From positions 1-64,000 of the IMG/VR virus record IMGVR_UViG_3300034072_000926: 64,000 nucleotides of DNA; one strand, 5' to 3'. A program made the translations under genes and the position numbers. Below the pieces are notes generated by a model, which saw only the letters and a list, made by a program, of their open reading frames with translations, was not told the DNA's origin and made no database searches. Of the stretch, positions 9,803 through 10,236 are shown one piece after another. Positions within the stretch are counted from its first letter, which is position 1. Every line of letters begins with the position of its first letter.

Positions 9803-9831
9803 AAAAAAGCCCCGGAGTTTCCTCCGGGGCT
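9803..9831 (-). terminator. intrinsic terminator (attenuator)
   Basis: AGCCCCGGAG-GAAA-CTCCGGGGC-TTTTTT. Confidence 0.9.
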
Positions 9832-9857
9832 CTTGTTTCCTGCAGTGTCTGGAACCT

Positions 9858-10037
9858 TTAGTCCCTGACTCCTTCCTGGAAACCGGCCCCGGCCGTATCA
9901 AGCTTATAATTGCTTTCTGGACGGGCTGGAATTGTGACGCCACGCTGCGACCATTCGGCGCCCATAGCGACGACGGTAAAGGATGCGGCGTTCAGACCGG
10001 CCTTTCCGCATAGCATATGAGTTCCTTGATGCAACAT
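9858..10037 (-). CDS. putative leader peptide (59 aa, all 20 amino acids)
   Basis: Hand translation MLHQGTHMLCGKAGLNAASFTVVAMGAEWSQRGVTIPARPESNYKLDTAGAGFQEGVRD; 3' end overlaps antiterminator arm; below ORF-track size cutoff. Confidence 0.65.
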   Translation of the reverse strand: MLHQGTHMLCGKAGLNAASFTVVAMGAEWSQRGVTIPARPESNYKLDTAGAGFQEGVRD

Positions 10038-10236
10038 TGAAGTCTCGATTCCTTTAATAACGTGGCTGCCGTTGTGGCAACCTTGTTTCGCTTATTGTGC
10101 CGTTCAGCTAGGCTGTCAAGCACTAATTTCGCCACGCTGTAGATTTTCTTCTACGTTGTGTTCGAACTGCTAAATGCTGTTCTACTATGAAAGTTGCAGG
10201 AGCGTCTATATTATTTTCAACGCTTCTGTTTCTTTG

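Follow-up and report, generated by a model that had tools for sequence, protein, structure and literature searches.

How is the expression of a large phage tRNA array controlled, and does a small reading frame at the head of one such array take part in this control? In order to answer this question, we examined a window of 64,000 nucleotides (positions 1 to 64,000 of the 465,259-bp IMG/VR record IMGVR_UViG_3300034072_000926), in which ARAGORN gave 43 tRNA calls, 42 of them on the minus strand. An earlier note, based on the sequence alone, had described in this window a leader ORF containing all 20 amino acids, followed by an anti-terminator and a terminator. It had proposed that stalling of the ribosome at any codon would switch on read-through into the phage tRNA genes. 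As shown below, what the note had observed in the sequence was confirmed, with the exception of some sub-claims, whereas its interpretation was only partly supported. A small reading frame joined to a terminator/anti-terminator RNA switch sits at the head of the tRNA array in a clade of ~460-480 kb phages. It looks like a device that reports how well the ribosome is translating, possibly for all 20 amino acids at once.

The unit in the window

The coordinates were first checked on the minus strand, and the following features were delineated.

10236-10309, minus strand: tRNA-Ala(tgc), the conserved upstream neighbour of the unit.
10114-10119, minus strand: TTGACA, the -35-like hexamer of the putative promoter P1, part of the conserved motif (A)AAAGTGCTTGAC; the -10 is weak in this window (AATAAG, 10096-10091).
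10064-10082, minus strand: 5'-proximal hairpin of the leader transcript, GGTTGCC-ACAAC-GGCAGCC.
10049-10056, minus strand: purine-rich SD-like element (TAAAGGAA), 12-13 nt before the first AUG, which can pair with codons 35-37 (AAUUCC, 9933-9928).
9858-10037, minus strand: leader ORF of 59 codons with all 20 amino acids and a UAA stop.
9966-10011, minus strand: internal hairpin GCGGAAAGGCCGG ... CCGCAUCCUUUACCG, inside codons 9-24.
9917-9928, minus strand: segment 1 (CAGCCCGUCCAG, codons 37-40), a candidate anti-anti-terminator or pause-hairpin strand that pairs with segment 2.
9878-9896, minus strand: segment 2 (ACGGCCGGGGCCGGUUUCC, codons 48-53), the 5' strand of the anti-terminator.
9851-9865, minus strand: small hairpin GGGAC-UAAAG-GUUCC with the UAA stop codon (9860-9858) in its loop, forming the apex of the anti-terminator.
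9824-9840, minus strand: segment 3 (GGAAAC-AAGA-GCCCCGG), shared by the anti-terminator (with segment 2) and the terminator (with segment 4).
9801-9833, minus strand: intrinsic terminator, stem GAGCCCCGGAG / CUCCGGGGCUU, loop GAAA, then a U-run.
9700-9728, minus strand: P2, a promoter-like element TTGACA - 14 nt - TGC-TAAAAA (extended -10 type), 75 nt after the terminator.
9332-9699, minus strand: leader RNA of the tRNA array, conserved and structured in relatives and partly diverged in this window.
8553-8628, minus strand: tRNA-Pro(ggg), the first tRNA of the main array, with 41 further tRNA calls down to position 447.

Of the 59 codons of the ORF, 38 are distinct, and Asp47 is the 20th amino acid to appear. 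A second ATG at 10016 is preceded, six nt upstream, by AAGGA. When the 3' arm of the terminator was left out, CCGGGGCCGGTTTCC (9892-9878) paired with GGAAAC-AAGA-GCCCCGG (9840-9824), with a folding energy of -35.7 kcal/mol (z = -4.9). The whole 296-nt RNA was far more stable than its shuffled versions (z = -5.9). TTGACA hexamers were also found at 9728, 9401 and 7916, close to the positions where the note had placed downstream internal promoters.

However, three points did not hold or were weak. The -10 of P1 is poor in this window, and P1 was not listed by a promoter scan. The note had matched three Ser codons of the leader to three Ser anticodons of the array, but ARAGORN found only two (tga, gct). 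The four Leu codons do map one-to-one on tag, cag, caa and gag; overall, though, the leader codons were no more readable by phage tRNAs than the codons of ordinary genes (0.90 against 0.86, p = 0.37), so that the matching of codons to phage tRNAs is not significant. Furthermore, in a single sequence the content in amino acids is within chance. All 20 amino acids occur in 3.6% of the 59-residue windows of the long ORFs of this phage and in 7 of 89 small ORFs of the window, and 38 or more distinct codons occur in 4.3%. One of these small ORFs, of 66 aa (9540-9340, 320 nt downstream), also has all 20 amino acids but is not conserved, which indicates chance. It is the conservation in relatives, and not these counts, that shows the element to be non-random.

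Conservation of the frame in relatives

In order to find relatives, DNA similarity was searched among 50,697 GenBank phage records, and only the tRNA-Ala was matched. A protein search with the upstream neighbour gave nothing, an 874-aa protein gave only weak hits, and no cultured relative was available from these searches. However, the upstream 263-aa protein has ~45-50% identical homologues, whose contigs, of up to 481 kb, show the same order: gene, tRNA-Ala, ~900-nt spacer, tRNA-Pro(ggg) and the array. The spacer aligned with that of the window, and one relative has a called 59-aa gene at the same place. A full HMMER scan with the peptide then found 11 small homologues, and a profile search found 35 protein clusters of 42-84 aa, many of them on 370-470 kb contigs. 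Twenty loci were fetched (designated below by L-numbers), which gave 13 distinct lineages at the DNA level and 30 distinct full-length peptides.

In all of these lineages the unit is followed by P2, the leader RNA and the tRNA array, and the same tRNA-Ala precedes it in the relatives whose fetched DNA reaches that far upstream (with a ggc anticodon in L027). A Pro tRNA opens the array after the leader RNA in nearly all relatives, usually ggg; cgg comes first in L025 and tRNA-Lys in L022. In the window, an ORF with a T5orf172 domain (9331-8633) is inserted before tRNA-Pro. A covariance model found one copy of the unit per genome. A looser pattern scan of metagenomes was not selective, since among the 80 loci listed, of at least 115 matching stretches, one was a true instance (L093). 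A scan of bacterial genomes gave only two chance matches inside unrelated sequence, so no host can be inferred.

Translation of the ORF is inferred, but selection on its frame is clear. No in-frame stop was found in 19 sequences, against 1-5 in the other two frames, and all 9 distinct gap runs inside the ORF are multiples of three, against 4 of 20 outside it. The first ATG is invariant, whereas the second is replaced by ACG, ACN or AAR in 7 of 30 members, and codons 2-6 vary at third positions only. The start of the family is therefore the first ATG, as the note had assumed, and not the better-spaced second one. The SD-like GA(A)GG lies 12-13 nt upstream, which is a long spacing.

To examine whether the ORF evolves as a protein, it was compared with the neighbouring 70-aa gene of the same genomes, which behaves as a normal gene. 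Variability at codon positions 1/2/3 was 59/65/81 in the leader against 35/24/118 in this gene, amino-acid identity was 0.61 against 0.84, and identical codons among conserved residues were 0.77 against 0.49. Thus, the ORF evolves as RNA and not as a protein. In agreement with this, the C-terminal residues follow the covariation of the helices (FQE / FGD / PDG / LQE), and L025 keeps GCGGAAGGC of the internal hairpin, also found by RNAalifold, in a different reading frame through a compensated frameshift, which shows constraint at the RNA level. AlphaFold with the family alignment gave a pLDDT of 54 and no secondary structure. Pfam, PHROGs and PDB sequence searches with the peptide returned nothing, and phmmer hits to large Ig-repeat or InlB-repeat proteins were set aside as multi-stretch composition matches. 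The properties of a type I toxin were not found either: the peptide has no long hydrophobic stretch and no predicted helix, although a promoter-like site is present on the plus strand at 9620-9648.

The predicted terminator/anti-terminator switch

The folding of the two alternative structures and the search for a syntenic unit in related tRNA clusters had been set beforehand as tests of the proposal. At the 5' end, the proximal hairpin was present in 13 of 13 lineages with different stem sequences (-7.9 to -12.5 kcal/mol), and RNAalifold found pairs with 4-6 sequences changed on both sides. The SD/AUG1 region was predicted to pair with codons 30-38 in all lineages, GGAAU:AUUCC in the window corresponding to GGGUAAU:AUUACCC in L003. 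Cognate against non-cognate energies were -7.8 against -6.7 kcal/mol (permutation p = 0.017). This pairing would restrict initiation to a short co-transcriptional window.

In transcripts ending before segment 3, segment 1 paired with GG.CGGG of segment 2 in all 13 lineages, and RNAalifold found the helix 174-181/223-231 with 2 + 2 compensatory cells, but the pairing is weak in this window (about 6 bp) and its support is moderate. Within it, the stretch 9925-9919 can sequester the anti-terminator strand. If that pairing persists, stalls early in the ORF may not give read-through.

The anti-terminator, in which CCGGGGCCGGUUUCC (9892-9878) is the strand provided by segment 2, consists of an outer helix, CCGGGG(C):(G)CCCCGG, an inner helix and the apical hairpin with UAA in its loop. 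CCGGGG of segment 2 is invariant in all loci, and in this segment third codon positions are fixed while first and second positions vary. The inner helix occurs as GUUUCC:GGAAAC, GUUUGG:CCAAAC, GAACC:GGUUU and GUUUAC:GUAAC, and the apical hairpin was formed in 13 of 13 lineages, with arms that differ in almost every lineage. A column-based count of covariation on the MAFFT/CM alignment was only modest because of register shifts, the covariance model having reproduced the register errors of MAFFT. To overcome this problem, an alignment-free test of cognate against non-cognate duplexes was used. It gave -7.0 against -4.0 kcal/mol for the inner helix (p < 5e-5) and -8.0 against -5.7 kcal/mol for the arms of the apical hairpin (p = 1.5e-4). 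The geometry is constant, with 32 or 35 nt from CCGGGG to the stop and 31-37 nt from the stop to CCCCGG.

The terminator (-23.3 kcal/mol), an 11-13 bp GC-rich stem followed by a U-run, is conserved in all relatives, although many of them have an interrupted U-tract (UUUCCUUUU). Its upper stem varies, but its CCCCGG:CCGGGG base is invariant, which fits a strand that must stay complementary to two partners. In L017, the base next to it changed in all three segments, to A in segment 3 and to U in both of its partners.

The order of folding was then examined. In 13 of 13 lineages the transcript ending after segment 3 had the full anti-terminator as its minimum-energy fold, by 7-16 kcal/mol. With segment 4 added, the terminator state was better by about 5 kcal/mol in the three lineages modelled (the window, L005 and L017). 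Anti-terminator hairpins were -34.5 to -43.4 kcal/mol, and terminators -22.7 to -26.4 kcal/mol. The outcome must therefore be kinetic, as in the trp leader. Equilibrium modelling with a masked ribosome footprint shifted the balance towards anti-termination only for ribosomes at codons 37-46 in L005 and L017, and weakly. In the window the terminator state was favoured for every ribosome position (+5 to +8 kcal/mol), so that the model rests on an inferred kinetic trapping.

As for the promoters, GTGCTTGAC of P1 is nearly invariant in 19 loci, relatives have (T/C)ATAAAT downstream, and the motif AAAGTNNTTGAC is enriched in the window (14 matches against 4.3 expected). However, the -35 to -10 spacing of P1 in relatives is unusual, and its activity is inferred. 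P2, of a type common in this phage, is a better promoter than P1 in this window, and GTTGTTGACA and GCTGCTA are invariant in all loci. It is followed by a conserved, structured ~330-nt RNA, for which RNAalifold found 51 pairs in 9 relatives, 17 of them with compensatory changes. Rfam searches at the gathering and E-value thresholds returned only tRNAs and noise for the locus, this RNA included. As P2 lies between the terminator and the tRNA genes, read-through from P1 can only add to the array's own transcription. The switch does not exclusively gate the array, the word 'gating' used in the note overstates the case, and the regulatory range may be small.

Interpretation and known systems

Taken together, these results are best explained, with moderate confidence, by a ribosome-mediated transcription attenuator at the head of a megaphage tRNA array. 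In this view, transcription starts at P1, a 5' hairpin caps the RNA, and one ribosome loads at the first AUG before the SD/AUG region is paired with codons 30-38. While the polymerase makes codons 37-53, segment 1 would pair with segment 2, which may act as a pause hairpin. When segment 3 emerges, its GGAAAC would pair with the free GUUUCC of segment 2, a 6-nt toehold (segment 4 would have only a 1-2 bp toehold on segment 3), and the pairing would zip into CCGGGGC:GCCCCGG, building a long hairpin with the stop codon at its tip. The 5' arm of the terminator would be sequestered in this way, giving read-through. This would be prevented only if a ribosome is on codons ~46-59 or on the UAA at that moment, that is, if translation has kept pace with transcription. 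The terminator would then form and a ~285-nt leader RNA would be released. Anything that delays the ribosome in the 59 codons, such as shortage of a charged tRNA, cleaved tRNAs or general inhibition of translation, would raise read-through into the P2 leader RNA and the tRNA genes. The analysis itself established the open frame kept in the relatives, the covarying helices, the mutually exclusive pairings and the constant position in the genome. By contrast, promoter activity, translation of the ORF and its coupling to transcription, pausing, the kinetic order of folding, the response of read-through to the ribosome and the physiological signal are inferred from sequence and structure, without support from expression data.

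The sensing of any codon, as proposed by the note, is attractive, plausible and independently supported, but unproven, and we consider it only as a tentative reading. The leader would be selected to contain at least one codon for each of the 20 amino acids, so that depletion or cleavage of any one aminoacyl-tRNA species, for instance by host anticodon nucleases, would delay the single ribosome, let the anti-terminator form and boost transcription of the phage's own tRNA array, in a negative-feedback loop for counter-defence. All 20 amino acids are held by 29 of 30 distinct family peptides of 59-66 residues, whereas column-shuffled alignments gave a mean of 12.9 and a maximum of 20 of 30 in 5000 trials; this control ignores phylogeny and is inflated by it and by alignment uncertainty in the variable region. 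More telling, exactly one Cys is present in 29 of 30 peptides, the member P0023 having none. Cys10 was lost in at least three lineages, and Cys was regained at positions 3 (twice, in separate clades), 23 and 27, while none of the 24 peptides that keep Cys10 has a second Cys (Fisher p = 4e-5). His occurs almost only in the conserved N-terminal extension. The Cys pattern is expected if a codon for each amino acid must be present somewhere, and it is hard to explain for a folded peptide.

Among the other explanations, a stand-alone gene for a small (59-66 aa) phage protein, with its own promoter and terminator and a merely structured mRNA whose alternative pairing has no regulatory role, is unlikely. 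The ORF is conserved in 35 protein clusters, with invariant M1, H7, W29, P40 and G50 and nearly invariant K12, F20, Q31 and R32, it has its own promoter-like element and terminator, and P2 makes the downstream genes independent of it. However, the lower amino-acid identity and the much higher synonymous conservation than in the adjacent gene, the C-terminal third changing as dictated by helix covariation, the compensated frameshift, the moving Cys, and the absence of a predicted fold and of any family or structure match speak against it. Slightly less likely still, the product could be the terminated ~285-nt RNA itself, a trans-acting or dual-function small RNA as for the attenuator-derived rnTrpL/peTrpL pair (PMC6614838, PMC7298713). 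The ORF would then serve stability or a one-shot translation event, and the switch would set how much of this RNA is released. The very stable fold, the protective 5' hairpin and strong terminator, which are hallmarks of stable small RNAs, and long invariant stretches such as CCGAAUGGUCGCAGCGU are in favour of this reading. Against it, no complementary target of the invariant stretch was found in the 64-kb window, and the stretch is largely accounted for by pairing with the SD/AUG1 region. This reading does not explain the strict preservation of the frame and of the stop codon at the hairpin apex any better than attenuation does, and it is not exclusive of attenuation. Finally, a chance ORF in a non-coding spacer, next to an ordinary terminator ending tRNA-Ala transcription, would fit the unremarkable all-20 content of the window alone, but it is already contradicted by the frame, start, stop position and 3n indels conserved across about 13 diverged lineages and by the covarying helices.

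Phage tRNA arrays are now seen as counter-measures against host defences that destroy tRNAs (PMC10264068, PMC11464382, PMC11555353), while the control of their expression is essentially unknown. No description of such an element in phages was found by full-text searches of a limited literature collection, and, as far as these searches go, it would be the first leader-peptide attenuator described in a phage tRNA locus. It offers a simple circuit in which translation performance feeds back on tRNA supply. If the all-20 reading is right, it is a new sensing logic for attenuation, with one sensor for the whole tRNA pool rather than for one amino acid. It would also be a compact natural reporter of global decoding capacity, which could be useful in cell-free and synthetic systems. 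In addition, the work brings out a second conserved structured RNA, with no known family, just upstream of the tRNAs.

Among known systems, the architecture was first compared with the leader-peptide attenuators of amino-acid operons of Proteobacteria (trpL, hisL, thrL, pheL, leuL and ilv leaders). The unit shares with them a short ORF, here with translation inferred, overlapping segments 2:3 and 3:4, with a moderately supported 1:2 pairing, an intrinsic terminator, a stop codon placed so that a terminating ribosome would block the anti-terminator, and a ribosome-binding site that can be sequestered after the first round of initiation. However, it shows no run or enrichment of codons for one amino acid, its ORF is of 59-66 codons (against 14-32) and holds all 20 amino acids, it lies in a phage upstream of tRNA genes rather than biosynthetic genes, and a separate promoter follows the terminator. 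The best Rfam leader hit, His_leader on L003, reached only 20.5 bits against a gathering score of 49 (E = 0.88).

The nearest functional analogue is the bmrB leader of the B. subtilis bmrCD operon, which is, like other leaders sensing inhibition of translation, a long ORF (53 codons) without an amino-acid run. It has a terminator, an anti-terminator and an anti-anti-terminator, and its ribosome acts as a general sensor of translation speed, codon choice tuning read-through (PMC4191407). In bmrB, the terminator lies inside the coding region and controls an ABC transporter in response to antibiotics, whereas here it follows the stop codon, the downstream genes are tRNAs and the element belongs to a phage; there is no sequence similarity between the two.

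T-box riboswitches are also terminator/anti-terminator switches, which report tRNA charging upstream of translation-related genes. They bind one uncharged tRNA directly and need no ORF, while here the reading frame is under selection and no T-box model matched. Lastly, the tandem P1-P2 promoters of bacterial rRNA/tRNA operons recall the present arrangement, in which two putative promoters lie about 390 nt apart upstream of stable-RNA genes, the upstream one being potentially regulated and the downstream one potentially constitutive. In rrn operons, regulation acts at initiation (ppGpp/DksA, Fis), and no translated leader or terminator is known between the promoters.

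The region between the inferred promoter P2 and the tRNA array

The following features were located between the inferred promoter P2 and the first tRNA of the array.
9332-9699 (-), conserved, structured RNA of ~330 nt
9340-9540 (-), 66-aa ORF inside this RNA
8633-9331 (-), 232-aa ORF with a T5orf172 / MUG113 (GIY-YIG-type) domain
9620-9648 (+), promoter-like match on the opposite strand

The structured RNA was also present in relatives, among them the loci L003 (13455-13783) and L005 (11620-11939). It contained invariant stretches such as GUCAAGUGG...GCGGAACGAGACUGCGGGAUAGCCACU, and 17 base pairs showed compensatory changes. 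No Rfam family matched this RNA, which may be a processing or leader domain of the tRNA precursor. The 66-aa ORF located inside it also contained all 20 amino acids but was not kept open in relatives, and it provided a useful internal example showing that this property arises by chance in a single sequence.

The 232-aa ORF was inserted between the leader RNA and tRNA-Pro. It was absent at this site in most relatives, although a similar ORF was found nearby in the relative locus L022. This ORF looks like a mobile endonuclease-type insertion.

Promoter-like motifs on both strands

The best promoter-like match of the region (TTGACA, 17 nt, TG-TACATT; 10 of 12) was that of the plus strand, and its -35 overlapped the conserved GTCAAGTGG motif. 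Such an element would give an RNA antisense to P2 and to the proposed attenuator; the terminator hairpin was also flagged on the plus strand.

In addition, a recurrent promoter-like motif was observed window-wide upstream of minus-strand genes and inside the tRNA array, for example at 631, 13977, 17454, 27827, 7916 and 5833 (-). It consisted of an A-rich stretch followed by (A)AAGnnnTTGAC, 15-17 nt and TGTTAC(A/T). With at most one mismatch, AAAGTNNTTGAC occurred 14 times against 4.3 expected.

Disputed tRNA calls and comparison with other RNAs and phages

Within the array, some tRNA calls were disputed.
4831-4900 and 4905-4976, tRNA-like sequences seen by Rfam and not called by ARAGORN
4589-4642, partial tRNA-like sequence, likewise seen by Rfam only
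5839-5911, tRNA with a two-base anticodon called by ARAGORN
2338-2421 (+), tRNA-Leu called by ARAGORN, which abuts a minus-strand tRNA-Asp and is probably false

A weak Rfam match to the Y RNA-like family YrlA (24 bits against 69, E = 0.19) was found at 8202-8321 (-), in a gap between tRNA-Gly and tRNA-Pro. This match is probably noise, but Y-like RNAs do occur next to tRNAs.

Finally, a more distant phage group was represented by L007-L009, the contigs carrying P0004, a more distant homologue of the upstream gene. This group has no homologue of the leader unit described here; it has different small ORFs (64 and 58 aa) interspersed among tRNAs, and a PTH2 peptidyl-tRNA hydrolase gene.
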